DNA of 46,103 nt from Basidiobolus meristosporus CBS 931.73 (taxonomy: Eukaryota > Fungi > Basidiobolomycota): contig MCFE01000683.1 of assembly GCA_002104905.1 (NCBI GenBank), positions 1 through 46,103 of the forward strand, given 5' to 3'. Shown here in pieces: positions 1 to 46,103 of this stretch; the stretch's first letter is position 1; every line of letters starts with the position of its first letter. The notes beneath the pieces were generated by a model, which worked only from the letters and a program-made list of their open reading frames with translations, made no database searches and had not been told where the DNA came from. Made by a program: the position numbers and the translations under genes.

Positions 1-2343
1 AGTTACAGGTACTACCATATCCCAATCTCATCAAGAATATTACCTTCAGGTCTGTCATGGATGCATGTTGTACATCAACATTTAAAACTAAGCCTATTTT
101 ACTCCGTTAGAAAATCTGGTACCCTAACTGATTTTCCCTAACTCAAACATAGCTAATCCCAGTTATGGTATATTTTATCACTTCTCAGAATCTACTTTCA
201 GCTGTCACACCTGATTAACTTTCATGTGGACATTACATCCTCAACTGATCTGCAAAGCCTTTCCAAGTGATTAGTCATCTGTGATCTATCCAACCACTTA
301 GCAGTTGCCAGGACATCCACTGCTTAATGATGTAATTTCTCATTTATCTTATGCACCTATGAACACCCCAGCAGATTTCAATTAGTCCAGTCCCTTGGCG
401 CTTACTAATTCAACTTGATCAGAAAAATATAAATAAAGTTTACTGAACCTTTTGGTTTAGTGTGTGTCTCAACAACACTAAGATTGTGCCTCAGCAAAAT
501 TATGAATTCAACATATCCATTCTAGTTTCTACCCAAGCCTAGCATATCTAGCACTCCCAAGAACACCAAGCCTAGCCTGCATAGCAAACCATCTCTGCTG
601 CCTTTATAGCCCAACTCAGCTATGTACAAGACCAATATTAGACCAGAACTTCTCTGCTAATATTTCTGTCACTCTTGACAGTTCTAAGATTCTGCATTTA
701 GTTGTTACTTAGGTTCAGTTAACTCATTTGAGAGTTTATTGCACTTTTCACTTGGATACAATAATGTGATGAGTTATCATATGGAGGACAGCCAGGAAGA
801 GTTAGAAAGTAGTGAGGACAGATGTGCACATGGAGACACCTATGCCTATGGTATTAAGAAGTTAAGCAGCCCTAATGCATGAGTAATCAGTTAAGTAATG
901 CAAAGTTGGGTTGGGAGCAACTAGCAACTAATTTTTATTAGGAAAACTCTTCCAATGTATGCTGGATTTCTCTCAGTCACCAGCCAATTTCAACACCATT
1001 CAGTACAGAATTCATACAAACAAGAGCCAGGGTGCACCTATAAGGGGGACTAGAATCCAGCTGGGAGAAGGAATATACTGGCTAAATACCAAAATATTCT
1101 TTGCAGATATTCTGGAGGTATACATGGCAGAAGTGGTGGCAATCAAGCATATGTTTGCAAGATGTATATGTTAGCAGCAGTACAAGGTATATGGCAACTT
1201 TGCAAGTAATACACTAAAAAGCTGTAAAGTTAATGCGATACATGTATCTCAATTGCTGAAGGTGTGTGTGCTTGTAGAGGTTAGTAAGCAGGAGGTCATA
1301 GTATTTTTTGATTTAGAGTATATGTGGAATACTCAAGGCAGTAGTAGGTAAGAAAGTAAGGAGGGGTGATTCTACAGTGGAATATACAAATTGCACAAGG
1401 GGAGGTAGAAAAAGAAAATACCATCTGGTAAATTGGTACAGTAGCATTATACAGAACTAGCTGTAGGCTGCCATACTGCTGTGATAATGCCATAAGAGGC
1501 TTGCAATGAGGCCATCAAAACACTGTCAAGTTTTTGCCATATAAGGCAACTGGACTTACTGTCTGATGAGATCCAATCACATAGTTATATAGCGCACTGA
1601 GACCACAACAATGCCATGTCATCCTTGGCAAAATGCTGTACAAACACTGTTTTGTTTTTAACTTTGTTTGGCTTTAAAATTAGCCAAACACTGTTGGGAT
1701 CCCATCATAAGAATGTGTAGATGTTCAATAAATCCAAGCTGCTGATATTATTGTGGTCTCCTGACAGGATCTTGACAGCTGATCTTGATTGGATCCACCC
1801 ACAGGACCAAGTTATTTTTCATAGGGATAAGAATCAATCAATTACAGGCAATCCATGATTGTTTGAGACCATAATGATATATTCAAGCTTGTAGACCAAA
1901 AGGGGATATCTTGGTCAGTAAACCCATCAGGTAGGTCTGTATACTTGTCCTCACTTTGTTCCCACTCAAGAATGTAGCTTTTACATCCACTTGAGGAGTA
2001 ATGAAGTGCTATATGGCAATATTAGCCAGTATTAGCTGGATGGGATTAAACTTTGCTACTGGTGCAAAGGCTTCAGTGAAGTCCAGACCTTGGTTTGATA
2101 GTATCCTTTGGCTGCAGGTCTTACTTTGTATCTTTCAACTGTATCATCAGCCTTATGTCTAGTCCTAAAGACCCATCTGAATACAACTGACTTTTGATTG
2201 AATGATAATTTTCCAAGTCCAGTTTACCTTCAAGGCCTATTACTCCCCAGTCATTACAGATCTCCAGAGCTTTGTCTGTGGGACATTTAGGGCCTCCTTT
2301 ACTCTCTGGGGCTCATCAATATGGACTGAATAAGCCAGGTATG

Positions 2344-2689
2344 GGTTAAAAATTTGTATTACACCTAGGTTTTCACCTGATTTAGTCACTAAGACTATTA
2401 CCTAGAGATCCTAGATAACACTTACAAGATTCCTTGTTGGGATTCACTTAGAACATTCTCATCAAAATGTCAGATATGCAGAACATGAGAGTTCTCAAAG
2501 TTATCTAAACAACCCCAAACTTTGCACACATGTTCTTGGAACCTTTCTAAGCATATTCAATGTGTTTACCTTGCCAAGACTTTGTAAAGGTACAAATACT
2601 ATTTTTACCTTGAATAAGTCATGAAGTGGGGACCCAATAATCTGCTTGCTTTCCTGTTAAATGCCAATTTCTCCAAAACTTATACAACA
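2344..2689 (+). mobile_element. Degenerate solo LTR inserted in the IN/RT linker of the old element
   Basis: Colinear with the 349-bp family LTR; ends ...tatacaaca; GTATG direct repeat at 2339-2343 and 2690-2694 (putative TSD). Confidence 0.7.
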
Positions 2690-4469
2690 GTATGTACCAG
2701 CACTGATTTAGTAATTAGGGTAATTTGTAATCCAGTTGAATAATATGTTCTGTGGAACAGGAATGGCCACTTCTTGGATAAACCTGTGCACTTGTTGAGG
2801 CTGAACCATGGTCTTAGAGCCCTCTGGAGTGAAAAAGTCTTCATTGTTTGGCTGTAATTCAGCCCTGATTATTAGTAGACTGGACATTAGACTTGCGTCA
2901 TTGTCTGACACACTTATTGGTAAAATCTTGAGTTTACATCAAACTGCACACACTTGGACCTGATCAGCTTCTTTGCTTTGGTAATTTAGAGCTTATTTGT
3001 ATTATGCATATAGCAGCAGCCTAGAGTATGCATCTTACGCTTTTTAGCTCATGTTTTAATGGAACTCCAGGAAGTTTCTGGGCATATGCTGTACACCCGT
3101 ATATTCTTGGTGTACAGCATTTGATGTATATCCACACCATACTTCAGATGGAGTAGAATCATGAAGTAGTTGGCTACAACACCTATTGTCAAGACATACA
3201 GTAGCAGCAATTGGTACTGCCCAAAAATTATAAGAAATATTTGATCATGGAATGTAGATCTAGCCATATGATGTATTCATCTGTTTGCTTGTTCTGACAC
3301 TCTGTACTGATGTAGAAGGTATGGTGCAGTGGTCACCTGCTTCATGCATCTGTATTGAAAAGTGGATGAAGAGTCTAAAGGTATATTATCCACCATTTTC
3401 AGATCACACTGTCTTGATTTTCTCACTAGTTGCTCTAGCCTCCATGGTTTGGAACTCTCCAAGCTTAGACAGAGCTTTTGCTTTTCTTCTCATTGAGTGA
3501 GCCCATGTGTATCTTGCATAATCACCATTGAATATGATTAAATACTTTTCTCCACCATCAGATAAAACTTGTGCAGCACTTCTATGCTTGGGTAGTTTAT
3601 ATTTAATATCTGATGAGCTTCAATCAAACCGGTTTTGTTGAACAGCTCTCTAGCTGGTCTCTGGTAGATGTAGGCTTCACAGGGGCTTAAATTAGCCAGG
3701 TAATCAGATCTTACTCCTGAAATTAGCTGATATTCAATCATTATGCTCAAATAATGAAAATTGATGTAACCAAATTTTCTGTGTTAACAACTTGGTGTTT
3801 GTTCATTCATAGGATTTTACTAGCTTCCAGATATGATACATTATAAGTCTGCTTGTGTAGACTCTGATCTCCAATATCCAAGGCATTTTGAATGCCATTT
3901 TGATTGGTGAATCTGCACTCAGAATTATCAAAACTAACACTGAGTCCTTTTGGTGTGTCCTTGATTACTGATAACAAATATTTAGCTACTTCTGGTATAT
4001 AAAGTACTTCTTGAGGGTTGGTGTATTGCCTCTTCCACTACCTCTGATCTTTATTTCAGTAATTTCATATCCAATTGAATAAAGTGCTCTGTTGTCTCCT
4101 ATGAAAACCTTCCTAACTGCATTTATTGATATGGAGTAAAAAATTCTTTTTGGTGCTCAAAGAGTTCAGTTGCTGCAAAGTCTATATATTACTCCTGAGA
4201 GTCTTTATTTGCTGTCACACTGAGTTCAGATATGAATATTTTATCCTCCATAACTGCAGCACTTCCATATTCACACTTTTTCTGCCAGTTTTCTCACTTT
4301 TCAAGACACTGGTCTGATATATATTATATCCCATCACAGTAGCTGAAAAATCATTGCAGTTCCCTGTAAAAGGTCTTGAGTGCCTCCTTCAGTGGTTGGC
4401 CTTGCTTGTAAAAGCTTTTCCTTATTCCTTCCTACTGGCACTTAATCCTTCATTTAGATGCCTGCCATA

Positions 4470-4816
4470 TTCTGTAAGAGTTTTGAAGATATTGGAAGGG
4501 ATTGGAAAAATATGTAGATTATATGGCTTAAACCTATTAAATTATACAATGTGAAAGTGGTATTTAGAGTTTTACATGGTCTTGGCAAACAAACATGTGA
4601 CATATGCTTAGGAAGGCTCTGAGAGCATGTGTGTAAGGTTTGGGCTTATTTGGACAACTTTGAAATATTTCATGTTTTGAGTACCAGATGTTGTGGTGAA
4701 TCTATGCCAAATAAGTCCGAGTCAAGAACTTAGTCAGAGCTCTATAAGACTTGTAGACTGTAGTTTTGGTGACTAAGTTAGGTGAATATCTAGGTGTAGC
4801 TACAAAGCTTACAATC
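4470..4816 (-). mobile_element. Degenerate solo LTR inserted in gag of the old element
   Basis: 347 bp, colinear with the family LTR; CCATA TSD at 4465-4469 and 4817-4821; the flanks rejoin into contiguous gag sequence. Confidence 0.8.
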
Positions 4817-5375
4817 CCATATACATAACTCAAGGTAAAGTCTTCAGTTCTGGACTCTGAGACTAGCATAAGGCCCTATGAATTCTCTGTCAGGCTAATT
4901 TGATTGGTACCAATTGCATCTTCATCAGTTGCTTGTAACTCTGCTGATTCAGTCTCCTTGAATAATAGAGTAACTCTGTTGATCAGATTTTTCATATCTT
5001 TGTCATATACAATTTTTGTTTAAGTTACATCTCCTTATCAGCTGAACAGAACTGATAGGCATCTTCTAATGCCTTCTAGGCATTCTTTGCTGTTTTGCTC
5101 TTGAGAATGGAACTGTAACTAGACTTAAATATTGAGGTAAATGCAGGTAAAGGCACCTTGTACTTTCATCTGGCACTTGAAGGCTTCTGCTCCTACACCT
5201 TTAGGAGGCCATCCCTTTCCCACAACAATAACCCAAAGGCCCCTCATTTAGCAGCATCTTCATATTCACCATCCATACTTGGTATGTAGATCCCTCCCAC
5301 TACTCACCAGGGGGAGATGCTCCACTATTAGCAGTAGTTCACCTTCCAGAGAGTGCCAACTCAGAGCTCAAGGCC

Positions 5376-6077
5376 AGTGGTAAGAGTTTTGGAGATATTC
5401 TAAATGACTGGTGAAAACAGGCAGATGAGGTGATTTTCATTCAATGATTTATTCAATAAAACAGTGGTGTTTATAGTTGTACATGGCCTTTGCAAAGCAA
5501 GCATATGAAATATGCTTAGAAAGGTCACAAGAGCATGATTGTCAAGTTTGGGGCTGTTTGATAGGCATTAAGATTTCTAATATTCTGTGTACCTGATACT
5601 TTAGTTAAAATATTCCAAGAATATCTGAACAAGGATTTTGGCCAGAATTCTCCAATATTGGTAGACAATGATTTGTTGTAAAAGTTTGTAATTCCACCTA
5701 AATATTCACCTAACTTGGCCACTTAGATCATTACTTACAAATCTTAGCAAATACTGACCAAATTTCTTGTATGGATTTACTTGGAATATTTTCACCAAAA
5801 TAACAGGTACCCATAACATGAAAATTAGATAAGCTGTCCAAACAGCCCCAACCTTTGCATACATGCTCTTGGGACCTTTCTAAGCCTATTCTATGTGTTT
5901 TTTATGCCAGGATCATGTAAAAGTACAAATACTACTTTTACATTCAATAAGCATTGAGTGAAAACTACATAATCTAATTGTTCTCCCAATGATTTCCAAT
6001 ATCTCCAAGACTCCTACAACATGATTGAAGTGACTAAGTTAAGTGAACATTTAGGTGTAAATACAAAATCTACAACA
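5376..6077 (-). repeat. 5' LTR of the old element, split by a solo LTR
   Basis: Family LTR sequence from agtggtaagag (5376) to tacaaca (6077); degenerate PBS (gagctcaaggcc) immediately to the left. Confidence 0.75.
5674..6021 (+). mobile_element. Solo LTR (348 bp) inserted inside another LTR of the same family
   Basis: TGTTGTA...TACAACA termini; TGATT TSD at 5669-5673 and 6022-6026. Confidence 0.9.
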
Positions 6078-6939
6078 TGAATTATGTCAGAGTATAGATA
6101 CCACTTTTCCATTCCATAAATCATACATGAAAGCCACATGGTTGGAGTAGCCATTGAAATACACAATATGAAGTTATCACAGTGCATACTGCAGTAGTAG
6201 TTATATTCTATAAAAAAATCCCTGGGGTTGTGAATGAGTTGCAAAGAGCGCTCATCTAAAGTAATCTAGTGGTTGAATTTTCGTAAAGAGTTAGGTTTGT
6301 ATGGTACTCACTAATCTGTTATGAACAAATTTCCATGCTAATTTCCAATAGATGTCACTATTCAATATCCAGTGTAAACAGATGCATGCAAGTTACTGGA
6401 GTTTAGCCGATCCAAACTCAATTAGGTAGTGTAGTTGAGCTATGGATGTTAGGGTTCAATCCATATAGCAGTTTATCAACATGCGCTGTAATTCATCATC
6501 CTATTATTATTCATGATGATCAAATGTAGTTTGCAAACAACATCCGCCAACTTTTAATACATGTAGTCATACAGGTGACGGTCAAGAAATCACGTATCAT
6601 ACATGGTTGGAGTGAGGTATTCGAGAATTATTAGATCTTTCAATCGGAATAGTCCACACCGGCTGGTTCTGAGCATTCAGTATATAGTTTTACCTGTAAT
6701 TCAGCAGAGTAATGCCTTAACATAATTGACATTCAACAATGGTGTTCGTTTCCCGACATCAGACCCGCTATTAGCAATAAGATTCGTATATTGGATTTCA
6801 TTTGGATTGTCGAAAGTGGATTTGCACTCGGGACATGTATTTGCTCATGGATATAGGAAATGGAATCTAGTGAGATTTCGGATTTGTACAGGATAGCCAC
6901 AACTGGAGATAGGGAAAGTCTCTACACTACGTGTGTTGT

Positions 6940-8393
6940 CTAAGTGAAGGAAAATTGTGGGAAGCAACGGGTCTTCCATCTAGACGAGCCATTGTCGGGA
7001 CGTGGTGCGATGGCTGGAGTGTGAGCCTTCTCGTTGATTTCTTTTTCGCGGGATCCCTTGAGGTCAGTGACAAGGATTCCTCCTATCGTATTACGTACAC
7101 GAGTCCTCATACGGCGCAATTTACCACGTAGCTTGTCTGATGCTTGCTTAGACTGCATTAGGATGCTCTGATGGCGTTTGAGGGGTGAGTCGTTACTGGA
7201 GCTAGGTGCTACTTCAGTCGCTACGTCTGATTCTGAAGTCTGGATCGCGGTAGAAGATTCGTTCCCGAAACCGTTGGGGTCCGTCGACTTCGCTTGTTTG
7301 CTGTCGGCTACCTTCTCACTTGCCATGACAAGGGTGGAGCCGGTACTGACGGAGGTGCTTCTTATGAAGCCGGACGAGCTTCGAGATTTTTGGTTCTTGC
7401 TATGCAGGAGGAAGGAGGATATGATGGAGATCCTCGACTTGTTGTTACCCTTTGATTTTGCGCTCAGGTTTAAGATGCTGGAGCGCAGGCTCGAAAGGAG
7501 GGGCGAGCGGGGGGAAGGTTTGTGATCAGTCAAGCGGTTCAGATTCGAGACAAGTTTGTACTCTATGGGCGGCATGGCTCCTAAAGAGGTGCTCAGATTT
7601 CTCAGGGACAGTGGCATAGCGTTGGTGGCAACTAGGGCAAAGGTCAGGGTTAGCTGGTTCCTCTAGGGTCGGGGCTGATGCGAAAGTCTTACCAAATTTA
7701 ACAATGTTCTTGGGCACCCATCCTTTTGGATCCCCATCGGCAACAAACACCACGCGGCATTTGCTGTCATCTTCCGGCTCGGCAAAGACACACATCCCCA
7801 AGAAACTGACATCCATGCGAAGCACACCCTTCTTCACCGGGCATTTCTTGTGATCCATACTCTTCCCAACTAGAATATATTTCCCGTCCTCCAATTTTTT
7901 CATCGTTGAAAACAGAAGAACGTCCCTGGCCGATATGGGCCAGATTGGCTTGGTTCGGATATATTGGAATCGAGTGACCGGGTCTACCTCGTCGATGATC
8001 TCTGCGCAATCACAGAGATCGTCGTACTCCTTCCACCTTTCCACATCTAGCATATACTCGAATGCCAATTCCGGCTTGCAGTCGAGGCGAGCAATCACCT
8101 TGTAGCCGTAGCTGACTTTGGGGTCCTGGAAGATTTGAATGTAGGGCTCCTCGGTACGATGCAGCACCTTCTGGAACCGGTCACTCTCCATGGAGCTGTC
8201 TAGCGACTTGACAAACTGTGATAGCATCTTCTCGCATTCTTCCGAGTACTGATGGCTAGAACCTGAGAGCAATGCAATTGAGCGTCTACAACCCATGCAC
8301 TTGGAAGTGACGCTAACACTAACCTGCTTCGTGCTCCCGGTTTGAGGTTGGCGTCGCTGGAGAGCCAGTCAAGTTTTTGGTAGCGGCAGGCAT
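6940..8393 (-). CDS. START-domain lipid-transfer protein with long Ser-rich C-terminal tail; exons 8393-8324, 8262-7693, 7631-6940
   Basis: START fold motifs (FEYMLDVERWKEYD, YIRTKPIWPISARD, DPKGWVPKNIV). Two 61-nt GT-AG introns (8323-8263, 7692-7632) restore MPAATK... and ...IVKF-VATNAMPLSL. Confidence 0.8.
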
Positions 8394-25473: not shown

Positions 25474-26623
25474 ATGTCAGGTTCGTACTCTCAAAGCAGT
25501 GGTTGGCGGAGCCTATGTTGATTTCCCTTTCTTGATAGATCACGACACAACCTCTTGGGTAATGATGGTGGCCGATGTGTTCATTTCTATGTCTTACATG
25601 GCAATCCCGATCGAAATCTTCTTCTTCCAGCGTACCCTCACTCTGCCGCTGCCCATGCTCTACAAGAGTGTCCTGCTTCTTTTCGAAGCTTTCATCACTG
25701 CTTGCGGAGCCACCCACTTGGTGACCGTCTGGAAACCTTTTGCTAACACTGAGGTGGCCCTATGTGTTGTGAAGGTTGTCACAGCAGTCATCTCGACGCT
25801 CACGGCGATTCTGCTGATCCAGGTATTCCCCAAGGCGTTCTCGCTACCCGCGAGAGCCGCCTGGTTGGAGGAGGAGTTGGGATCTCACATGCGGCACGAG
25901 CAATCGCTTCGAATGGCCAACGACCTGCTGCTCAAGTTCCGCAAAGTCACCCAGCATATTCGCAGGACACTCGACACCAACTCCGTCTGCCAGACATCGG
26001 TGTTTGAGCTCTCTGTGACCCTGGGGGTGGGTTGTGCGATCTACATGAAAGAGGGAGACACCTATGTGTGCACCCACGAGGACTACAGACATGTCAATGA
26101 TCATTCACTCCGCCACTCGGACAAGAACATCTTCTGGCAGAAGATCAGGATATCCAAGGAGAACAAGATGATCACCAGGATGGCCACCCTCTCATACGCC
26201 TGTTGCCTTAACAAGAGAGATCTCAGTGACATGGTGGGGGAGGGGGTGAACCTGCCATTCAAAGCGGCCATGGGGGTCCGCTTCAAGATCGATGGGAAGG
26301 ATTCCGGGTTCGTGCTGATCTACTCGAGTGAGGAGACATGGAGCTTACCGGAGCAGGAGGTGGAGCTGTTTGAAGATATAGTAGGCCAAATTGAGATCGC
26401 TCTTCAACAATCTTCGCAGCTATCGAAGGAACATGGATGGAAATCCCCCAGTTCAAAGCTTACCCAGAGTATAGAAACTCCGGGACATGCTGATGAGCGA
26501 GGACTAGGATCATTACGACAAAGTGCAGCGGAAGCAACGCTGCCTTCTTCATCACCTCCACCATTTTCGAACCATGGTCAAGAGTACGAGGTATATGATA
26601 TTGAGCCTAAATACTGGCATTAA
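25474..26623 (+). CDS. Ethylene-receptor-like membrane protein A (ETR1-type ethylene-binding domain + GAF, no kinase), 363 aa; exons 25474-25480, 25539-26623
   Basis: ADVFISMSYMAIP...LFEAFITACGATHL...VKVVTAVIS aligns with Arabidopsis ETR1 (SDFFIAIAYFSIP...QFGAFIVLCGATHL...AKVLTAVVS). IRRTLDTNSVCQTSVFEL resembles the ETR1 GAF start IRSTLDRHTILKTTLVEL. 58-nt GT-AG intron after ATGTCAG. Confidence 0.9.
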
Positions 26624-28413
26624 TACTCACCATTAGTCTGTCACGATTTTGATCACTGGTGCGGGCAATGAAATGGTTGCCATTATTGACTTCAAATGAC
26701 AGAACTGTCCTTGGAAAAGCGCTAATGAAATTTCGAAATCTTGTAAATGTATAATCAATAAATACTACAAACCTGGTCTAATCAATACTTTGTGGATCTT
26801 CAGTCATGAGAACTGGAGCTGTTTCTCATCCAGATTTGTTCAACCCTTGTCAGACATGCTATTTTGTAATTTACAGAAACCTAAACAAGATCTGTTGCTC
26901 TGTAACGAGATTGAGGACGAGAGCATTGCTCTGTCAATATATCTATATTGCACATCCAAACTCAAATTCGATCTGAGTAATGTAACCTATACTTGGCATG
27001 TTAACGCACCGAAGGATCCAGAAAAGTTCAGGATAGCGGATACAATTGTACACAAAGCATTACTCCAAATATTTGGGGTCATTTGGGCATGATCTGAATA
27101 TGACCATCAACATTATTGGGCTCCTATAACAAAAGGTGAACGCTACGCTACAGCCCTGCATTTTCAGAGTCAAGTAATTAGATTTTAAAGGTTGTTAATC
27201 CATGATACTATAGTAGATCTCAGTTGGCTCAAATTACTTTCCAGAGTGATTTACTTTATTCCGTTGAAATATGAGATTAGATTAGATGGAATTGCTATTG
27301 TAATTAGGAGTTCATAGGGCTACAAGAATAAAAGATGTGGTGCTTATATTATGGCCAGTTGAGGGGCTTCATGTCATATGCCTCCCCATCTTTTCCTTCA
27401 TCATGATACGAGAAAGGTGGTGGTGGCGGTAAAGAAATAGAGGTGTTGTGGTGGAGATTGGACAATCGGAATTTAGCCTCTTCCTCATCAGGCTTACCAG
27501 CTTCAAGGAGCTTCCCATGGCTGGATTTTCCACTTGCCTCGTTTTTCAATTGAGCAGATTGCTGAAGAGCGATCTCAATTTGGCCTACTATATCTTCAAA
27601 CAGCTCCACCTCCTGCTCCGGTAAGCTCCATGTCTCCTCACTCGAGTAGATCAGCACGAACCCGGAATCCTTCCCATCGATCTTGAAGCGGACCCCCATG
27701 GCCGCTTTGAATGGCAGGTTCACCCCCTCCCCCACCATGTCACTGAGATCTCTCTTGTTAAGGCAACAGGCGTATGAGAGGGTGGCCATCCTGGTGATCA
27801 TCTTGTTCTCCTTGGATATCCTGATCTTCTGCCAGAAGATGTTCTTGTCCGAGTGGCGGAGTGAATGATCATTGACATGTCTGTAGTCCTCGTGGGTGCA
27901 CACATAGGTGTCTCCCTCTTTCATGTAGATCGCACAACCCACCCCCAGGGTCACAGAGAGCTCAAACACCGATGTCTGGCAGACGGAGTTGGTGTCGAGC
28001 GTCCTGCGAATGTGCTGGGTGACTTTGCGGAACTTGAGCAGCAGGTCGTTGGCCATTCGAAGCGATTGCTCGTGCCGCATGTGAGATCCCAACTCCTCCT
28101 CCAACCAGGCGGCTCTCGCGGGTAGCGAGAACGCCTTGGGGAATACCTGGATCAGCAGAATCGCCGTGAGCGTCGAGATGACTGCTGTGACAACCTTCAC
28201 AACACATAGGGCCACCTCGGTGTTGGAGAACGGCTTCCAGACGGTCACCAAGTGGGTGGCTCCGCAAGCAGTGATGAAAGCTTCGAAAAGAAGCAGGACA
28301 CTCTTGTAGAGCATGGGCAGCGGCAGAGTGAGGGTACGCTGGAAGAAGAAGATTTCGATCGGGATTGCCATGTAAGACATAGAAATGAACACATCGGCCA
28401 CCATCGTTACCCA
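25556..28413. repeat. Inverted repeat: arms 25556-26406 and 27563-28413 (851 bp each), 1156-bp spacer
   Basis: Hand alignment finds 9 mismatches and no indels across 851 bp. Confidence 0.95.
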
Positions 28414-28500
28414 GGAGACTGGATTATCTTCCACAACTGGTAATACAAAAGGTTAATAACTGTCATCAGCGGTTCTGTAAGAATTGTACATACTTTGCAT
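27349..28500 (-). CDS. Ethylene-receptor-like membrane protein B (ETR1-type EBD + GAF, no kinase), 364 aa; exons 28500-28494, 28436-27349
   Basis: Same domains as gene A; 57-nt GT-AG intron after ATGCAAA at the same phase-1 position. Confidence 0.9.
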
Positions 28501-34523: not shown

Positions 34524-36948
34524 TGATATACGGAGAGTGGATGTAAAATATAGCCTTGCGTTAGGTAGTAGCAAGAACAAGGACGTAATGAATAGAAAGT
34601 CGGAAGAAATTTGCGTAGTGCCAGTGAATCTGGAGATCTGCTGGTGAACTGACTGAGAGTAGAGGAATGATGGTCATCAGTGGGCGATCAGTGAGATTAT
34701 ATAAACATGATCTCAGTCCTGGGTAAAGTCATTGCCGAATATGGTGCGTGATACCAGCTGAATTCTTGTCGACAATCTCTTTAGAAATTTTCACACCTGT
34801 TACATTAGCTTTCTATACTGATTCTCGAATTGCAGCGATAGGCCAATAACAAAGCATACACCATTTGAGAATAATCTGACAAAGTGCTGTGCCGACTGCG
34901 ATCTGATGGGAATTAGCTGAATGCGGCGGTGATGATTGAGCCGCTTGAGATCCAGTCAATTGGAACGAAGTCCACCAGTGAAAGTCTATTTGCCACAGAT
35001 CACTGACTGGGCTTGGGTTGAAGGAGACCTTATTAATCTTTTTTACGTCAGCGAGAACAATTCGGGGAATTGTCATGGCTGCCTACAAGAGTGGTAAGTA
35101 TCCAGTGACTAATGATATGCGGCCTGTCCATCAATTGGGTATCTTTATCGACGCAAAACTTCTGTAAATATTCCTTAAATTTCTAAAACTAGGCGCCAGG
35201 GCTATTCTTGGTAATCCGAGTGGCTAGATGGCCCACTCTAGATCACTTACGGTTTGGGCATAGTGCTCATCTAGATTTGATAGCTATGTGATCGAAAACC
35301 TATACAACTATGGAATCCACTTCCCATTTCCGGATCGATCATTCTTACGCCATTGGCAAATGGCAACTCTTCTGTACGGAAGTAATTTTTGTATGCCCCG
35401 CAGCTGGGGTAGAGTTCTTTTGTACCAATATGGGCGATATTAAGCGTATATTGTATAGGATGTGCTTGCCGTTATTTCCGATTTGATGCGCGTAGCCCGA
35501 TTTGAATGGCCACTTCGAACCTCGCCATTGTAATAGCAGAGGCAATGCTCAGTAATCGTACAGTTTCATTTTGTCAGATGCGCTGCGCAGCAGAGTTAAT
35601 GCAATGCTCTGCGCATTGACTACGGTCTGGTGGTCGCCAAGCCTACACACTAAGCCCAGGGGAATGTTTCTTCGCCAGTGGTCGTAACAACGTCAGCTAT
35701 GGTGAGTAAAGGCTGTATATTCTAATCCAAGTCCTCTATTCAACTGATTGGTCGAACTCGATGTTGTAGTAACGCACGACTTGAAGCACACATATATGAT
35801 ATAAACGACAAACATGGAATGGTTCCTATGTTTAGCAGAATGTCGAAAAAAGCCGGGTAAATTGGCAACTCGGGTTGTGGATTACCCAAATTGGTTTGGT
35901 ACATATTGTCGCTATGCATGGCATTTAGACCAAAGAATACCCAATTGTTACAAACTCGGTAATCGCTAACTTCTCTACGTTGCTTGCTTTGTTCTGGGAG
36001 CATATAGGTTAAATGTGTGTATTGCTTGATTAAGCGAAGACACCCATTGACTGAATGTTTCATCGGCCAGAACTAGGAAGCCATGGCTTGGTCCACTGCC
36101 ACTCAGTTTTTTCAATGACCCCATACAATTTCATATACGGAGCCTGCTTAATAACACCAAGCTGATTATTTTTGAAGTTCCGTATTTCATAGCAGTATCT
36201 ACCATTAGTCATTACAAGTGTCCGATGCCTTCAAATAGAGCTTCGTCACATTAATTAGTAAAAACCACTCTCAATCACAAGATGAAACTCAAAATTCATT
36301 TGTGCATACATATACGCACCTTTGGATATCGAGAATGCATTATACCTTTATCTGAGCTCAGGATCGCTTGAATTCTACCTGATAACCGTTACTTTGTGAT
36401 GACAAAATCGAATTTCTACAACTAACGTTTTATCCCTCTTCAACTGGGCCAAATTTCTGAAATATTAGCAAAGCATCTAATCAATTTTATATTTGTTAGA
36501 TAAATATCAACGAGATATTATCATATAAGATCTGATCGAATCTACCTATTAAGTAAGCGATATTTTTCCTGAAAAAATTCAATTTCTACAGTGATGTAGT
36601 ATTATAAGGTATGATATTACCATTGACTAATACTGCGCTTGAATTCCGTGTATGAGGATTCTGTACTTCTTCTACATGCCCTTCCAAGGGAATGAAAAGC
36701 TTGATTATTTCTATCCAAATGGACTTCAGAGCAGCTTAAGTGACGTCTCTGGAGAGTTGAGTATGTTTCATAATCTCGAAGCATCCTAAAGTGTCTATGC
36801 AATCTAAAGAATTTTGGATCAATTCAGTTATTGTACCCAGAGCGCGCCACAGTATACCAGAGGTACTGATAGAGCATCCAGGTGAGCCTGGGGTAAGGGA
36901 GGTAAGAATGCAAACTCAATAGTATCATAGTCAAATTGGTGTAGTTCT

Positions 36949-37103
36949 TGTTGTAAGAGTCTTGGGGATATTGCAAGTGATTCAGAGAATAAGATGATAA
37001 TGTACTTTTCACATGTTGATTTATTGAATGTAAAAGTAGTATCCGTACCTTGACATGGACCTGGGAAGCAAAACATGTAGGATATGCTAATAAAGGTCCC
37101 AAG
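36949..37103 (-). repeat. Copia LTR fragment (element A), cut by element B
   Basis: Starts TGTTGTAAGAG; colinear with the first ~155 nt of the family LTR, more diverged than later copies. Confidence 0.8.
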
Positions 37104-37697
37104 TGTTGTAAGAGAATTGGAGATATTGGAAGTGATTGGGAGAACAAGTAGATTATGTGGTTTTCACTTAATGATTTGTTGAATGTAAAAGAAGTTTTTA
37201 TACTTTTACATGATCTTGGCCTAGCAATTGCGTAGATTAGGTTTTGAAAGATCCCAAGTACATGTGTGCAAAGTTTGGGGCTGTTGGACAACTTATCTAA
37301 TTTTCATGTTCTAGGTACCTGATATTTTAGTAAAATATTTGAAGTAAATCCTGACAAGGAATTTGGTCAGTATTCTCTAGGATTTGAAGATAATGATCTC
37401 AGTGACTAAGTTAGGTGAATATTATGGTAGAACTACAAGTCTTTACAACACTCCCACTCAGCTAAATGTTTATACTGACTAGTCCTAATTTTGACCTAAG
37501 ATATTCAAACTTGTCTCTAGTTAATGGTTTGGTGAATATGTCTGCAATCATTTCATCTGTAGAATAGGAAGCTAAGCTAACTAATTTATTTGCTATAGCT
37601 TCATGTATGAAGTGATATCTGATATCTATGTGCTTAGTTCAAGCATGAAAAGTTGGATTTCTACCTAATTGTATAAATATCCTTATTATCTTAAAAC
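37104..37697 (-). mobile_element. Copia element B: 3' LTR (37104-37450), PPT (37451-37460), RNase H remnant; cut by element C
   Basis: TG...CA 347-bp LTR followed by ctcccactca and sequence matching the RH end of element E. Confidence 0.88.
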
Positions 37698-39008
37698 TGT
37701 TGTAAAAATTTGTAATTCCACCTTAATATACTCCTAACTTAGTGACTTAAATCATTACCTTCAAATCCTAGGGAATACTGACCAAATTTCTTGTTGGGAT
37801 TTATTTAGAATATTTTCACCAAATTACCTGGTACCCATAACATGAAAGTTAGATAAGTTGGCCAAACACCCCAAACTTTGCACACTTGTTCTTAGAATCT
37901 TCCTTAGCCTATTCTACATGTTTGCTATGCCAAGACCATGTAAAAGTATAAATACTACTTTAACATTCAATAAATCATTAAGTGAAAACCACATAATCTA
38001 CTTGTCCTCTCAATCACTTCCAATATCTTCTAGACTCTTACAATAGGTTATGAGCCCTAAGCTGTCACTCTCTGCAATGTCCACTACTGCTATTACTGGA
38101 ATTTTTTCCTCTGCTGAAAAGTTGGACAGATCTAACTACCAAGTGTGGAAGGTGACAATGAAGATGCTGCTACAAGAAAGAAGCCTTTGGGATTGCCATG
38201 GGAGAAGAATGCCCTCCTAAAAACATGGGAGAGGAAGCCTTAGAGTACCAGAAGAAAGACTAAAGTGCCTTTAACTGCATTTGCCTTAAAGTCAAAGACA
38301 AATTGCTAATTCAATGCTCTAGAGCATAAATGACTAAGAATGCCTGAAAGGCATTATAAGACACCTACCAGTCATGTTTTGCTGCTAAGAAAATGTATCT
38401 GAGACAAAAATTCTTTGCTACAAAGTTGCAGCCAGGAGTAGAAATGAGAAATCTAATTCACAAAACTACCATACTGGTAGATGAGATGGAATCTGTGGGT
38501 GTACCAACTAATGATGTGGATGTGATGGTAACCATCTTGAATAGCCTGACAGACAGGTTTCAGGACCTTGTATCAGCCCTAGAGTCCAGAACTGAAGATT
38601 TGACCTTAAATTATATATATGGAAGGCTCCTGGATGAAGAATTAAGAAAATCAAGCACCAATAAGAAGGAAGAAGAAAATGCTTTAATTAGCAATGATAA
38701 CCAATAAAGGAGGTACCCAAGACCCTACAAAGGCAACAGCTACCTGTTTGCAACTACTGCAAAAGGAAAGGACACACATCAGACCAGTGTCCCAAAAGGA
38801 GAGATAATCAGCAAAAGAAGCCTGAATATGGAAATACTACAACAACTGAAGATAGACTATTCATATCTGCACTAAATATGACCACAAACAAGGATTCTCA
38901 GATGTGGTTTATTGACTCTGGAGCATCTCAACACTTAACACACCAAAAAGAACTTTTTACCCAATACCAAGAGATTCCAATCAAGAAGGTTTTCATGGGT
39001 GACAATAG
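37698..39008 (+). mobile_element. Copia element C: 5' LTR (37698-38045), PBS, decayed gag and start of protease; cut by element D
   Basis: 348-bp LTR, GGTTATGAGCCC at 38046-38057, gag with stops, WFIDSGASQH protease motif, breaks at ...GGTGACAATAG. Confidence 0.9.
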
Positions 39009-42000
39009 TGTTGTAAGAGTCTTGGAGATATTGGAAGTGAATGGTGTTGTAAGAGTCTTGGAGATATTGGAAGTGATTTGGAGAACAAGTAGATTATGTG
39101 GTTTTCACTTAATGATTTATTGAATGTAAAAGTAGTATTTATACTTTTACCTGGTCTAGGCATTACAAACATGTAGAATAGGTTAAGGAAGGTCCAAAGA
39201 ACATGTGTGCAAAGTTTGGGGCTGTTTGGACAACTTTGAGAATTCTCATGTTCTGGGTACCTGGTATTTTGGTGAAAATATTCTAAGTAAATCCCAACAA
39301 GGAATTTGGTCAGTATTCTCTAGGATTTGAAGGTGATGATCTAAGTGACTAAGTTAGGTGAATATTTAGGTGGAAATACAAATTTTTACAACACTCCCAC
39401 TCAGCCAAATGTTCATACTGACTAGTCCTAATTTTGACCTAAGATATTCAAACTTGTCTCTAGCTAATGGTTTGGTGAATATGTTCGCAATCATTTCATC
39501 TGTAGAACAGTAAGCTAAGCTAACTAAGTTATTCTCTATAGCTTCACATATGAAATGATGTCTAATATCTATGTGCTTGGTTCTAGCATGAAAAGTTGGA
39601 TTTCTACCTAATTGTATACATCCTTGATTATCTTGAAATAAAGTAATAGGCGTTTTTTGACATAGGCCTAAATCTGTAAAGAGCTTTCTTAACCACATTG
39701 CTTCTTTTGTAGCTTCACAGGCTGCCATATACTCTGCCTCTGTAGTAGAAAGTGCTACGGTTGGTTGCTTTCTTGAATTCCATGAAATTGCTCCTTTACA
39801 GTAAAGAAAGGTGTATCCTGTGGTGGATCTTCTGTCTTCCAAATTTTGTCCCCAATCAGCATCAGAGTATCCCACAAGATCCTGTTCTGAGTCCTTATAA
39901 GTGTATCTTAAGCAGATATCAGCAGTTCCTTTTAGGTATCTAAAAATCCGCTTAACTGCTGCAATATGATCAGATCCATAATTCTGATTATGTTGGCTGA
40001 CAACTCCCACTGAATATGAGATATCTGGACGTGATCCAAGCATGATATACATCAGACTGCCGGCCATAGATTGATAAGGAATGTCAGGGCTTTCAGATGG
40101 CACCAAGCTCTCTTGATTTGGTTGAGTTTTGACCAAGTTAAGGTTTGTCTCCATTGGGGTAGCTGCAGGTTCACAGTCTTCCATTTTGTACTTCTTTAGT
40201 ATATCTTGAATATACTTGGATTGGCTTAGGGTAATAGTCTGGGTACTTCTGTCTATGGAGAACGTAATCCCTAAGTAGTAACTAAGTTCTCCTAGATTGG
40301 ACATCTTGAACTCTTTAGATAGGCTGGATTTAGTTTCTTTCAATGTTTCTAGGTTATTGGCGGCTATAATAAGATCATTCACATGCAGAGCTAATAGAAC
40401 TGGATTTGCTCTATCTGGCCTATAGTATATACTATAGTCAGCATTACTTCTTTTGAAACTCAAGGATTCCAAATAGAATCTATCTTGCAATTCCAGGCTC
40501 TTGGTGATTGTTTGAGACCATATAGTGACTTTTTAAGCTTGCAGACCAAATGGGGGTTATCTTGGTCAGCAAACCCATCAGGCTGGTCCATATACATGTC
40601 CTCATCAAGTTCTGCATTTGAAAATGCAGTTTTTACATCCATTTGATGAATAAGAAACTTATATTGGGCTGCAGTAGCCAATATTAATCTGATGGAATTA
40701 AACTTGGCTACTGGTGCAAAGGTCTCAGTATAGTCAAGTCCTTTTGTTTGAGAGTATCCTTTGGCTACAAGTCTTGCTTTGAATCTTTCAATTGTACCAT
40801 CAGCCTTGTATTTTGTCTTGAAGACCCATCTGCATCCAATTGACTTTTGGTTGATTGGTAACTTGACTAAGTCCCAAGTTTGAATTTCCATCAGGGCCTG
40901 ATATTCCTCAGTCATTGCAGATCTCCAAAACTTTGTCTCAGGGCTATTTAGGGCCTCTTTTACAGTCTGGGGTTCATCAATATGGACTGAATGGGCATAG
41001 GCTAAGTTTGTACCCTCATTAATATAGTAATTTGGACTATTTCTTGTCCAATTGGATCTCCAGGCATTTGATACTGGAATGATCACTTCTGGGATATTCC
41101 TGGGCACTGATTCTGGCTGAACCACGGTTGTAGAGTCCTCTGGAGTGGAATATTTTCATTGTTTTGCTCTGATTCGATCCTGACAATTGGTGGACTTGAG
41201 ATCAAATTTTTGTCATCATCTGATGTCATTTTTTGTGAAAATTTTGCATTTTCATCAAACAAAACACCCCTGGACTTGATCAGCTTCTTTGCTTTGGTAT
41301 TGTAGAGTCTGTATGCCTTACTCTCATTGCAGTAGCCCAAAAATATGCATTTTACACTTTTTGGCTCAAGTTTTGACTGATTTCCGGCCAGTTTTTTGGC
41401 ATATGCTGTACACCCAAATATTCTTAGATGTTCTGCTCTTGGTCTGTATCCATACCATGCTTCAAATGGAGTAGAATCACAAAGTATTCTGTTATAACTC
41501 CTATTTTTAAGGTATACAGCAGTGGCAACTGATTCCGCCCAAAAATCATAGGATAATTTTTGATCATGGATCATAGATCTTGCCATATCAATTATTGATC
41601 TGTTAGCTTGTTCTGCTACTCCATTTTGCTGTGGGGAGTATGGTACAGTAGTCTCTTGCTTTATCCCATGAATTTTGCAGAAGTGGATGAAGAGTTTTGA
41701 GGTATATTCTCCACCTTTGTCAGAGCATATTTTCTTGATTTTTTCACCAGTTTCTCTCTCCACCATGGCTTTAAACTCCCTGAGCTTAGACAAAGCTTCT
41801 TCCTTACTCTCCATGAAGTAGACCCATGTGTATCTTGTAAAATCATCAATAAAAGTGATTAAATACTTCATCCCGCCTAGGATAAATTTTGCATAGGTCC
41901 ACACAGATCTGAGTGAATTAGATCTAACTTTTCCTTAGTTTTGATTAACCCAGAGCTCTTGAACAGTTGTCTGGCTTGTTTCCCATATATGCAGGCGTCA

Positions 42001-43807
42001 CAGTGCTCCAAATTAGCTGGTGGATCAATTTTCACTTCAGAAATTAGCTGATCTTTGTTCATTTTGCACAAATAATCAAAATTGATGTGCCCAAATCTCC
42101 TGTGCCAAAGTATTGGTGTTTCTTCATTTAAGTTACTTATATTGGCTTCCAGATATGATGGAATATAAGTCAACTAGTATAGATTCTGAACTCTGATGCC
42201 CAAAGCAATATGAGCACCATTTTGATCGGTGATCCTGCATCCAGAATTGTCAATACAGAAACTGAGTCCTTCTGCTTTGGCCTTGCTTACAGAGAGTAGG
42301 TTCTTGGCTATTTCTGGTACATAGAGTACTTCTTTAAAGGTCAGTGTATGGCTTCCTTCACTGCTTCTAAGGTTTACTTGGATAGTTCCTTCTCCCACTG
42401 CATCAAGTGCTCTATTGTCACCCATGAAAACCTTCTTAATTGGAATTTCTTGATATTGGGTAAAAAGTTCTTTTTGGTGTGTAAAGTGTTGAGATGCTCC
42501 AGAGTCAATATACCACATCTGAGAATCCTTGTTTGTGGTCATATTTAGTGCAGATATGAATAGTCTATCTTCAGTTGTTGCAGCATTTCCATATTCAGGC
42601 TTCTTTTGCTGATTATCTTTCTTTTTGAGACACCGGTCTGATGTGTGTCCTTTCCTTTTGCAGTAGTTACAAAACAGGTTGCTGTTGCCTTTGTAGGGTC
42701 TTTGGTACCTCCTTTGTTGGTTATCATTGCTTATTAAAGCATTTTCTTCTTCCTTCTTATTGGCGCTTGATTTTCTTAATTCTTCATCCAGGAGCCTTCC
42801 ATATATGTAATTTAAGGTCAAATCTTTAGTTCTGGACTCTGGGGCTGAAACAAGGCCCTGAAACTTGTCTGTCAGGCTATTCAGGATGGTAACTATCACA
42901 TCCTCATCAGTAGTTGGTACACCCACAGATTCCATCTCATCTACCAGCAGGTTAATTCTGTTAATTAGATTTTTCATTTCTTCTCCTGACAGCATCTTTG
43001 TAGTAAAGAATATTTGTCTCAGATATATTTTCTTAGCAGCTGAGCATGACTGGTAGGTGTCCTCTAATGCTTTCCAGGCATTCTTTGCTGTTTTTGCTCT
43101 TGAGCATTGAATTAGCAATTTGTCCTTGACATTAAGGCATATGCAGTTAAAGGCACTTTGTTCTTTCTTCTGGTACTTTAAGGCTTCCTCTCCCACGTTT
43201 TTAGGAGGGCATTCTTCTCCCATGACAATATCCCACAGGCCTCTTTCTTGTAGCAGCATCTTCATCTTCACCTTCCACACTTGGTAGTTAGATCCATCCA
43301 ACTTTTCAGCAGAGGGAAAAATTCCAGTAATAGCAGTAGTAGACATTGCAGAGAGTGACAGCTTGGGGCTCATAACCTGTTGTAAGAGTCTTGGAGATAT
43401 TGGAAGTGATTTGGAGAACAAGTAGATTATGTGGTTTTCACTTAATGATTTATTGAATGTTAAAGTAGTATTTATACTTTTACCTGGTCTTGGCATTACA
43501 AACATGTAGAATAGGTTAAGGAAGGTCCAAAGAACATGTGTGCAAAGTTTGGGGCTGTTTGGACAACTTTGAGAATTCTCATGTTCTGGGTACCTGGTAT
43601 TTTGGTGAAAATATTCTAAGTAAATCCCGACAAGGAATTTGGTCAGTATTCTCTAGGATTTGAAGGTGATGATCCAAGTGACTAAGTTAGGTGAATATTT
43701 AGGTGGAAATACAAATTTTTACAACAAATGGGAGGACAAGTAGATTATGTGGTGTTCTCTTATGATCTATTAAATGTAAAAGTAGTATTTATACTTTTAC
43801 ATGATCT
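39009..43807 (-). repeat. Split LTR of element D (pieces 39009-39044 and 43727-43807), target of elements E and F
   Basis: Removing E rejoins tgttgtaagag...ggaagtg-AATGG-gaggacaagtagattatg..., a variant family LTR. Confidence 0.85.
39045..43726 (-). mobile_element. Full-length (4682 bp) Ty1/copia element E with LTRs 39045-39393 and 43378-43726; gag-pol disrupted
   Basis: 349-bp LTRs differing at 4 positions; AATGG TSD (39040-39044, 43727-43731); PBS 43366-43377; PPT 39394-39403; gag CCHC knuckle (CNYCKRKGHTSDRC), protease DSGAS, integrase HHCC and DDE, RT, RH. One stop, three frameshifts, RT YVDD changed to HVND. Confidence 0.97.
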
Positions 43808-46103
43808 TGTTGTAAAAGTTAGTATTTCCACCTAAATATTCACCTAGCTTAATCACTTAGATCATCACCTTCAAATCCTAGAGAATACTGACCAAACTCC
43901 TTGTTGGGATTCACTTGGAATATTTTCACCAAAATACCAGGTACCCAGAACATGAGAATTCTCAAAGTTGTCCAAACAGCCCCAAACTTTGCACACATGT
44001 TCTTCAGACCTTCCTTAACCTATTCTACATGTTTGTAATGCCAAGACCAGGTAAAAGTATAAATACTACTTTAACATTCAATAAATCATTAAGTGAAAAC
44101 CACATAATCTACTTGTTCTCCAAATCACTTCCAATATCTCCAAGACTCTTACAACAGGTTATGAGCCCCAAGCTGTCACTCTCTACAATGTCTACTACTG
44201 CTATCACTGGAATTTTTCCCTCTGCTGAAAAGTTGGATGGATCTAACTACCAAGTGTGGAAGGTGAAGATGGAGATGCTGCTACAAGAAAGAGGGCTTTG
44301 GGATATTGTCATGGGAGAAGAATGCCCTCCTAAAAACATGGGAGAGGAAGCCTTAAAGTACTAGAAGAAAGAACAAAGTGCCTTTAACTGCATTTGCCTT
44401 AATGTCAAGGACAAATTGCTAATTCCATGCTCAAGAGCAAAAACGGCAAAGAATGCCTGGAAAGCATTGGAAGACACCTACTAGTCATGTTCAGCCGCCA
44501 AGAAGATGTATCTGAGACAAAAATTCTTTACTACAAAGATGCTGTCAGGAGAAGAAATGAAAATCTAATTAATAAAATTACCCTGCTGGTAAATGAGATG
44601 GAATCTGTGGGTGTACCAACTACTGATGAGGATGTGATAGTTACCATCCTGAATAGCCTGACAGACAAGTTTCAGGGCCTTGTTTCAGCCCCAGAGTCCA
44701 GAACTAAAGATTTGACCTTAAATTACATATATGGAAGGCTCCTGGATGAAGAATTAAGAAAATCAAGCGCCAATAAGAAGGAAGAAGAAAATGCTTTAAT
44801 AAGCAATGATAACCAACAAAGGAGGTACCAAAGACCCTACAAAGGCAACAGCAACCTGTTTTGTAACTACTGCAAAAGGAAAGGACACACATCAGACCGG
44901 TGTCTCAAAAAGAAAGATAATCAGCAAAAGAAGCCTGAATATGGAAATGCTGCAACAACTGAAGATAGACTATTCATATCTGCACTAAATATGACCACAA
45001 ACAAGGATTCTCAGATGTGGTATATTGACTCTGGAGCATCTCAACACTTTACACACCAAAAAGAACTTTTTACCCAATATCAAGAAATTCCAATTAAGAA
45101 GGTTTTCATGGGTGACAATAGAGCACTTGATGCAGTGGGAGAAGGAACTATCCAAGTAAACCTTAGAAGCAGTGAAGGAAGCCATACACTGACCTTTAAA
45201 GAAGTACTCTATGTACCAGAAATAGCCAAGAACCTACTCTCTGTAAGCAAGGCCAAAGCAGAAGGACTCAGTTTCTGTATTGACAATTCTGGATGCAGGA
45301 TCACCGATCAAAATGGTGCTCATATTGCTTTGGGCATCAGAGTTCAGAATCTATACTAGTTGACTTATATTCCATCATATCTGGAAGCCAATATAAGTAA
45401 CTTAAATGAAGAAACACCAATGCTTTGGCACAGGAGATTTGGGCACATCAATTTTGATTATTTGTGCAAAATGAACAAAGATCAGCTAATTTCTGAAGTG
45501 AAAATTGATCCACCAGCTAATTTGGAGCACTGTGACGCCTGCATATATGGGAAACAAGCCAGACAACCGTTCAAGAGCTCTGGGTTAATCAAAACTAAGG
45601 AAAAGTTAGATCTAATTCACTCAGATCTGTGTGGACCTATGCAAAATTTATCCTAGGCAGGATGAAGTATTTAATCACTTTTATTGATGATTATACAAGA
45701 TACACATGGGTCTACTTCATGGAGAGTAAGGAAGAAGCTTTGTCTAAGCTCAGGGAGTTTAAAGCCATGGTGGAGAGAGAAACTGGTGAAAAAATCAAGA
45801 AAATATGCTCTGACAATGGTGGGAGAATATACCTCAAAACTCTTCATCCACTTCTGCAAAATTCATGGGATAAAGCAAGAGACTACTGTACCATACTCCC
45901 CACAGCAAAATGGAGTAGCAGAACAAGCTAACAGATCAATAATTGATATGGCAAGATCTATGATCCATGATCAAAAATTATCCTATGATTTTTGGGCGGA
46001 ATCAGTTGCCACTGCTGTATACCTTAAAAATAGGAGTTATAACAGAATACTTTGTGATTCTACTCCATTTGAAGCATGGTATGGAAACAGACCAAGAGCA
46101 GAA
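43808..46103 (+). mobile_element. Copia element F (5' LTR 43808-44156, PBS 44157-44168, gag-PR-IN pseudogene), runs off the window
   Basis: 349-bp LTR, GGTTATGAGCCC, near-identical to E in reverse orientation, with extra stops and indels. Confidence 0.95.

Follow-up and report, generated by a model that had tools for sequence, protein, structure and literature searches.

The convergent gene pair described here lies on contig MCFE01000683.1 of the fungus Basidiobolus meristosporus CBS 931.73, and the window that was analysed is this whole contig (46,103 nucleotides). The two genes, winL on the forward strand and winR on the reverse strand, encode truncated relatives of ethylene receptors. Each protein has the Pfam membrane domain ETR1_N (PF25487; E 1.5e-21 and 6.5e-22, 77-78 bits against a cut-off of 27), and a GAF-like domain that spans the full length of the Pfam GAF profile (PF01590, positions 2-133 of 133), with a weak score (E 0.045, 14.7 bits, below the cut-off of 22.4). 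No Pfam match to HisKA, HATPase_c or receiver domains was found up to E 1 in either protein, and both end about 70 residues past the GAF-like domain. The winL protein (P0013) is made up of an L-type head (MSD...), the ETR1_N and GAF-like domains and an L-type tail, with no kinase, while in winR both head and tail are R-type. Both genes carry the motif ACGATH, and C58 and H62 do not vary among the six family members; these two residues of the second transmembrane segment (TM2) are taken, after Fig. 3B of PMC5285503, to be the counterparts of Cys65 and His69 at the copper/ethylene site of ETR1.

One of the two genes has a published history. winL corresponds to Bm|388937|, reported as a truncated ethylene-receptor homologue by Herivaux et al. 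2017 (PMC5285503). In the relevant passages of that paper and of a preprint on Ancylistes (10.1101/2023.12.22.573025), the truncated homologues of Entomophthoromycotina are described as having an ethylene-binding transmembrane domain and a GAF domain, without kinase or receiver, and the truncation is taken as gene erosion. A partner gene, paralogous pairs, concerted evolution and inversion are absent from these same passages.

The heads of the two proteins, MSDHDTTSW in winL and MQIVEDNPVSW in winR, come from 7-nt first exons followed by introns of 58 and 57 nt, respectively, at the same phase-1 site. The deposited model of winR (P0001) begins at an internal Met at 28404, and the upstream first exon proposed here is supported by the R-type start ATGC(A/T)(A/G)A followed by GT, which is kept in p106R and p10R, the R-type genes of scaffolds 106 and 10 of the same genome. 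Gapped alignment of the 5' ends (first exon, intron and head) and of the 3' ends (tails) of winL and winR found them homologous and strongly diverged, including the sequences of intron 1.

The stretch that lies between these ends forms an inverted repeat. A repeat search returned one long repeat in the region, with arms at 25552-26418 and 27551-28417 (867 nt, 99% complementary, with 1132 nt between them). A base-by-base count over the arms as delimited in Table 1 gave 9 mismatches in 851 nt, at positions 25563, 25735, 25738, 25741, 25742, 25744, 25750, 25957 and 25969, so that six of the nine fall within one 16-nt patch that reads AAA CCT TTT GCT AAC ACT in winL and AAG CCG TTC TCC AAC ACC in winR (whole codons given). 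The arm boundaries are sharp and in register with the codons, with ungapped identity reaching background in about 10 nt beyond both ends. A first-pass annotation, made from the letters of the window, had counted nine differences in 851 nt, placed six of them in a single patch with these codons, and described the N-termini, first introns and C-terminal tails as highly diverged. The count is exact and the patch was recovered with the codons as quoted, and the divergence of the ends is borne out by the gapped alignments and by the proportions of nonsynonymous and synonymous differences in the tails (pN 0.42 and pS 0.84, i.e., saturated).

Table 1. Coordinates of the convergent gene pair, its inverted-repeat arms and its tails within contig MCFE01000683.1.
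Feature	Position	Strand	Description
winL (K493DRAFT_388937, published as Bm|388937|)	25474..26623	+	exon 1 25474-25480, intron 25481-25538, exon 2 25539-26623 including stop
Left arm, putative conversion tract	25556..26406	+	conserved Trp before TM1 to end of GAF-like domain; core synonymous divergence (dS) 0.04
Patch with six of nine arm differences	25735..25750	+	Ala in winL, Ser in winR
L-type C-terminal tail coding region	26407..26623	+	...SLRQSA...SSSPPPFS...EYEVYDIEPKYWH; groups with p106L and BrB in tail tree
Intergenic spacer between stop codons	26624..27348	.	725 nt, presumably both 3' untranslated regions; no helicase gene or relic
winR	27349..28500	-	exon 2 28436-27349 including stop, intron 28493-28437, proposed exon 1 28500-28494 (ATGCAAA)
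R-type C-terminal tail coding region	27349..27562	-	...FRLSNLHHNTSISLPPPPPFS...AYDMKPLNWP; groups with p10R, p106R and BrA in tail tree
Right arm, putative conversion tract	27563..28413	-	from repeat search, base count and core dS

The history of the pair can be read against its relatives, which a protein word search placed in five Basidiobolus clusters only (the queries of the homology searches were exon 2 or database proteins). Searches of metagenome contigs with a single protein and with a family alignment found no further Basidiobolus loci. On scaffold 106 of B. meristosporus (locus L001), the order is a p450 gene, an L-type gene (p106L, +), a FANCM-like helicase gene (+) and an R-type gene (p106R, -). 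Scaffold 10 (L002, read in reverse) has p450, a 41-residue L-type relic, the helicase and an intact R-type gene (p10R), and the window has p450, two inserted genes, the L-type gene and the R-type gene, with neither helicase nor relic. A further locus, on contig JASJQH010007171.1 of Basidiobolus ranarum (L004), carries the p450-proximal gene BrA and a distal partner, BrB, that is cut by the contig end. Between loci, the p450 genes are only 68-73% identical in nucleotides, and the receptor cores about 73-78%. The receptor pair is, by sequence comparison, part of an anciently triplicated region.

The two gene types are recognizable at both ends. L heads start with ATG(T/C)CAG and read M[S/P]D...W, whereas R heads start with ATGC(A/T)(A/G)A and read M[Q/L]..E[N/D]..SW. 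L tails end in ...SLRQSA...PPPFS...EY.xYDxEPKYW, and R tails read ...F.LSN.H.NT..S...PPPFS...YDMKPLNWP. The helicase (Pfam DEAD, ResIII, Helicase_C and FANCM-MHF_bd) lies between the receptor genes at L001:11873-14637, L002:12523-14211 and L004:11865-15588, and neither tblastx nor blastn found a relic of it in the window spacer. The relic at L002:15102-15224 (-) is all that is left of the L-type partner on scaffold 10, so the R-type gene there (protein P0004) stands alone, without a conversion partner. The R-type gene of scaffold 106 (P0005, L001:15886-16941, -) lacks the terminal YDxxPxxW found in every other tail and has a long branch in the tree, features that may reflect relaxed constraint.

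Several comparisons indicate that the arms owe their near-identity to gene conversion. In the cores of winL and winR, third codon positions are identical at 276 of 284 codons, versus 22 of 68 in the tails (binomial P about 1e-122), and a codon alignment gives 8 synonymous differences in 193 sites (dS 0.04 by the Nei-Gojobori method). Between loci, dS is saturated in every comparison. Core trees group the genes by locus (winL with winR; p106L with p106R, bootstrap 100; BrA with BrB, bootstrap 78), while the tail tree splits {winL, p106L, BrB} from {winR, p10R, p106R, BrA} with a bootstrap of 100. The scaffold-106 pair has a tract with limits of its own, with a dS of 0.01 over codons 25-176 and 1.6 over codons 177-284. 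The B. ranarum pair has a dS of 0.35 over the 50 visible core codons, one derived residue in common and saturated tails, and its core is, on these values, apparently homogenised in part. The C-terminal tails themselves appear to be under purifying selection (p106L versus BrB, dN 0.20 and dS 1.66, dN being the nonsynonymous divergence). The view that winL and winR are ancient tail-to-tail paralogues, with a core that recent gene conversion has homogenised, is strongly supported. This had been the central claim of the first-pass annotation, and it stands on the discordant trees, on a dS of 0.04 against saturation, on the scaffold-106 tract and on the partial tract in B. ranarum. The same holds for the profile of dS along the alignment that the annotation had proposed as a check, with a core at 0.04 set against a saturated tail.

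The patch and the base composition add detail to the conversion. The Ala encoded in the patch of winL is also that of the scaffold-106 pair, and the Ser of winR is that of p10R and BrA, so both states are old. The 16-nt patch is likely an unconverted relic, as the first-pass annotation had it, a reading with which the recurrence of the Ala/Ser difference at other loci fits; the alternative is a gap, due to mismatch repair that was patchy or to the junction of two adjoining tracts. Conversion from another locus was considered as a source of the patch and rejected, neither patch sequence being found exactly in any other family member. Over codons 177-284, the GC content of third codon positions (GC3) is 0.72-0.73 in the window pair versus 0.54-0.55 in p10R and the scaffold-106 pair, which is unconverted there (Fisher p 0.007), and on scaffold 106 itself GC3 is 0.70 within the tract versus 0.54 outside it. 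Across the family, GC3 is high only inside converted tracts (the window arms and L001 codons 25-176), at 0.70-0.77 versus 0.54-0.58. The raised GC3 suggests a footprint of recurrent GC-biased conversion in an early-diverging fungus.

The orthologous locus in B. ranarum bears on a second claim of the first-pass annotation, that a crossover between the arms would invert the spacer and exchange the two tails, and for which a comparison with sister species had been put forward. In the p450 tree, B. ranarum pairs with scaffold 106 and the window with scaffold 10 (bootstrap 100), and the helicase agrees, so that L004 can be taken as the orthologue of L001. The B. ranarum contig is 17.7 kb long and has no N runs. 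The two loci are collinear from the p450 gene across the adjoining flank to the receptor core, and the helicase is reversed between the species (L004 12786-15601 versus L001 14637-11873), as is the L-type tail (L004 16667-17047 versus L001 11070-10693). BrA has the L-type first exon ATGTCAG, the same as that of winL, and an L-type head, yet its tail is R-type, and the tail of BrB is L-type. Since the order L tail-helicase-R tail is kept, the block would have flipped in one piece, with a breakpoint within each core, and the arrangement, as assembled, matches exactly the expected product of an arm-arm crossover. The B. ranarum state would be the derived one, given the p450 tree and the other state of all three B. 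meristosporus loci. The inverted inter-arm block is probably real, and the geometric claim has its counterpart in this one contig, with its L-head/R-tail gene BrA. The R-type tail in B. ranarum (L004:11100-11189) ends in ...EPLNGVVDRNSPFH in place of ...KPLNWP, its last residues being altered and extended. For the B. ranarum orthologue two isoforms are annotated, perhaps on the basis of transcripts.

A history that would account for these observations begins with an ancestral duplication that gave rise to L-type and R-type convergent, kinase-less, ethylene receptor-like genes, and this duplication would be older than both the regional triplication and the split of B. meristosporus from B. ranarum. 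Each gene would since have retained its own promoter, its head of 8-10 residues and its C-terminal tail, the latter under purifying selection, while the sensor core of 284 codons would have been overwritten repeatedly by intrachromosomal conversion between the inverted copies. The most likely route would be repair of a break templated by the partner arm and ending without a crossover. Tracts would end where homology ends, that is, on the side of intron 1 and the head and at the start of the tail, and the 16-nt patch would be a stretch that the last conversion event or events missed. Occasionally the outcome would be a crossover, in which case the segment between the arms inverts and the tails are swapped between the two promoters, and this would apparently have happened once, at the orthologous locus in the B. 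ranarum lineage. Inversion is thus pictured as, likely, an infrequent side effect of the recombination behind arm homogenisation and not as a switch in use.

This explanation as a whole, namely an old convergent pair with a conversion-homogenised core and a rare crossover inversion, is judged very probably correct. Several points weigh against it. The inversion is known from a single contig, and a literature search for JASJQH found no assembly paper that would give the sequencing technology. The contig ends inside the core of the partner, with its last 24 nt identical to BrA, and since this end lies within a homogenised arm, a wrong path taken by the assembler would look alike. The 5' half of the partner is missing, a word search with the first 150 residues of winR having come back empty, as is the distal flank. 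For CBS 931.73, the identity of the arms and the single orientation are those of the assembly, and the donor arm and the number of conversion events are hidden by synonymous saturation between loci (the S2 tree is weakly supported). Assemblies do err at repeats, and it could be argued that the near-identity of the window arms is an assembly or polishing artefact and that the B. ranarum inversion is an arbitrary path through a repeat, in an assembly whose contig stops inside the second arm. The CBS 931.73 genome was sequenced with PacBio (PMC7466969), so that a typical long read should be able to span an 851-nt repeat and its 1.1-kb spacer. Nine differences are retained in the window, including a clustered patch of which both states occur at other loci, the boundaries are sharp and in codon register, and like tracts with other limits are found on scaffold 106 and in the assembly of another species. 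The B. ranarum contig is free of N runs, and its arms differ at 12 of the 163 nt that are visible and hence are not an exact repeat there. An artefact of this kind is regarded as extremely improbable. Least credible of all is that the arms are alike through selection on the sequence itself or through a very recent partial duplication. All family members do have a highly conserved core protein, with many invariant alignment columns, but cores under equal protein constraint are saturated at synonymous sites elsewhere, so that protein-level selection cannot account for identity at 276 of 284 third positions. As for a recent duplication, the heads, introns and tails on either side are old homologous sequences that lie in register and pair with the L and R types elsewhere, and a fresh copy of the core pasted onto an existing partner would be gene conversion under another name.

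Two further alternatives give the inversion a use and a third gives one to the repeat. A working flip-flop, in which crossovers between the arms are frequent or induced, both orientations coexist and the exchange of tails between differently regulated promoters is put to use, is permitted by the geometry of the repeat. Homogenisation keeps the arms competent for recombination, one inversion has apparently occurred between species, and the window spacer, at about 1.1 kb, is the shortest in the family. The head-tail associations speak against it, as all five intact B. meristosporus genes pair an L head with an L tail or an R head with an R tail, despite synonymous saturation between the loci, and the helicase has the same orientation on scaffolds 106 and 10 (the window has no helicase relic and can therefore be scored for head-tail association only, not for spacer orientation). 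The P0001 cluster consists of winL and winR only, with no chimeric L-head/R-tail copy of the window locus in the assembly or proteome. Both genes would have a promoter in either state with nothing silenced, a flip would re-pair no more than the promoter and a head of 8-10 residues, nothing hints at silencing in the neighbourhood, and the closest fungal parallel keeps its orientation stable on laboratory timescales (PMC9731477). Such a switch is very unlikely. The comparison with the mating-type (MAT) flip-flop of methylotrophic yeasts drawn in the first-pass annotation is the part of its interpretation that found no support, with head-tail association constant over three diverged loci and one orientation in the assembly; the conversion half held, as did the geometry of the inversion in one B. 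ranarum contig. A programmed flip-flop is unsupported. A weaker proposal is that of a tail-shuffling inversion, in which strains and species of Basidiobolus segregate for both orientations, each of them recurring, here and at the sister loci. It is doubtful, though it has some chance of being right, and if it were true, each flip would reassign a tail, and hence a downstream partner, to a promoter, and the orientation would act as a regulatory polymorphism, both heritable and reversible, in a putative ethylene sensor. The inverted pair might also serve as a source of hairpin RNA, or be harmed by being one, with read-through from either gene across the 725-nt spacer giving an 851-bp stem that could feed RNA interference, which would be compatible with conversion. 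Its appeal is one of geometry only (convergent genes, a short spacer and 99% complementary arms), and with both genes intact and under purifying selection, and a two-isoform annotation in B. ranarum that may reflect transcripts, it is highly improbable.

Conversion with rare inversion has parallels among known systems. At the flip/flop region of Saccharomyces chromosome XIV, inverted paralogues are homogenised and the segment between them inverts on an evolutionary timescale, is stable in the laboratory and is not known to act as a switch (Salzberg et al. 2022, PMC9731477). The likeness lies in inverted paralogues homogenised within a genome and in an inter-arm segment inverted by homologous recombination. 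In yeast, however, whole genes lie in 4-kb arms around a 24-kb spacer with 15 genes, hence no chimeric genes arise, and re-inversion is recurrent within species, whereas Basidiobolus, with one assembly compared for each species, has one difference between species. The Basidiobolus arms are intragenic, a flip swaps the 3' tails, and the spacer is 1.1 kb (about 5 kb, with the helicase, at the sister loci). In mammals, conversion in the palindromes of sex chromosomes and repeat-flanked inversions at FLNA-EMD on the eutherian X have reportedly been described, in work attributed to Rozen et al. in 2003 and Caceres et al. in 2007. There too, arms are more than 99% identical through intrachromosomal conversion and spacers diverge and can invert, but the arms measure tens of kb to Mb and hold whole genes, in contrast to the 851-nt coding piece here. 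Mating-type flip-flop by inversion is said to operate in Ogataea and Komagataella, in studies ascribed to Hanson et al. and to Maekawa and Kaneko, both from 2014. It shares with the present case homologous recombination at inverted repeats that flips the segment between them; unlike here, where nothing of the sort is suggested, orientation in those yeasts sets which MAT locus is silenced, the flip is inducible and both states are present in a culture. In bacteria and phages, the G segment of Mu (with the Gin recombinase) and the R64 shufflon (with Rci) are invertible segments that swap C-terminal gene parts. Although these also place alternative 3' coding tails behind one constant 5' part of a gene, they do so with a dedicated site-specific recombinase, short sites and a single promoter, whereas the Basidiobolus pair has no recombinase or specific site, and instead two promoters and long homologous arms.

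Away from the receptor genes, the right end of the contig forms a nested, near-perfect palindrome (41431-43727 versus 43807-46103, 96-100% complementary, with a 79-nt centre) that runs to the last base and could be a fold-back element or a long-read artefact from a missed adapter. The contig ends are AT-rich (1-7000 and 36000-46103), with a GC content of 0.32-0.39 versus 0.43-0.51 in mid-contig. Both ends have several repeat families in common, at 60-86% identity, and these are probably transposon remains.

What the pair offers is a clean and datable instance of concerted evolution limited to one domain block of two genes. The duplication predates a regional triplication and a speciation, yet the cores differ by 1%, while the heads and tails are distinct and constrained. 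The presence of at least five intact family members, in pairs and with conserved tails, argues against reading the Basidiobolus homologue as an eroding remnant. The pair belongs with inverted paralogues that evolve in concert and occasionally invert through their repeats, its twist being that the arms are intragenic, so that a flip swaps the tails. If the B. ranarum inversion is confirmed, it would be the second fungal homogenised inverted repeat that actually inverted and, as far as the literature searches reached, the first flip to exchange coding tails between two genes.

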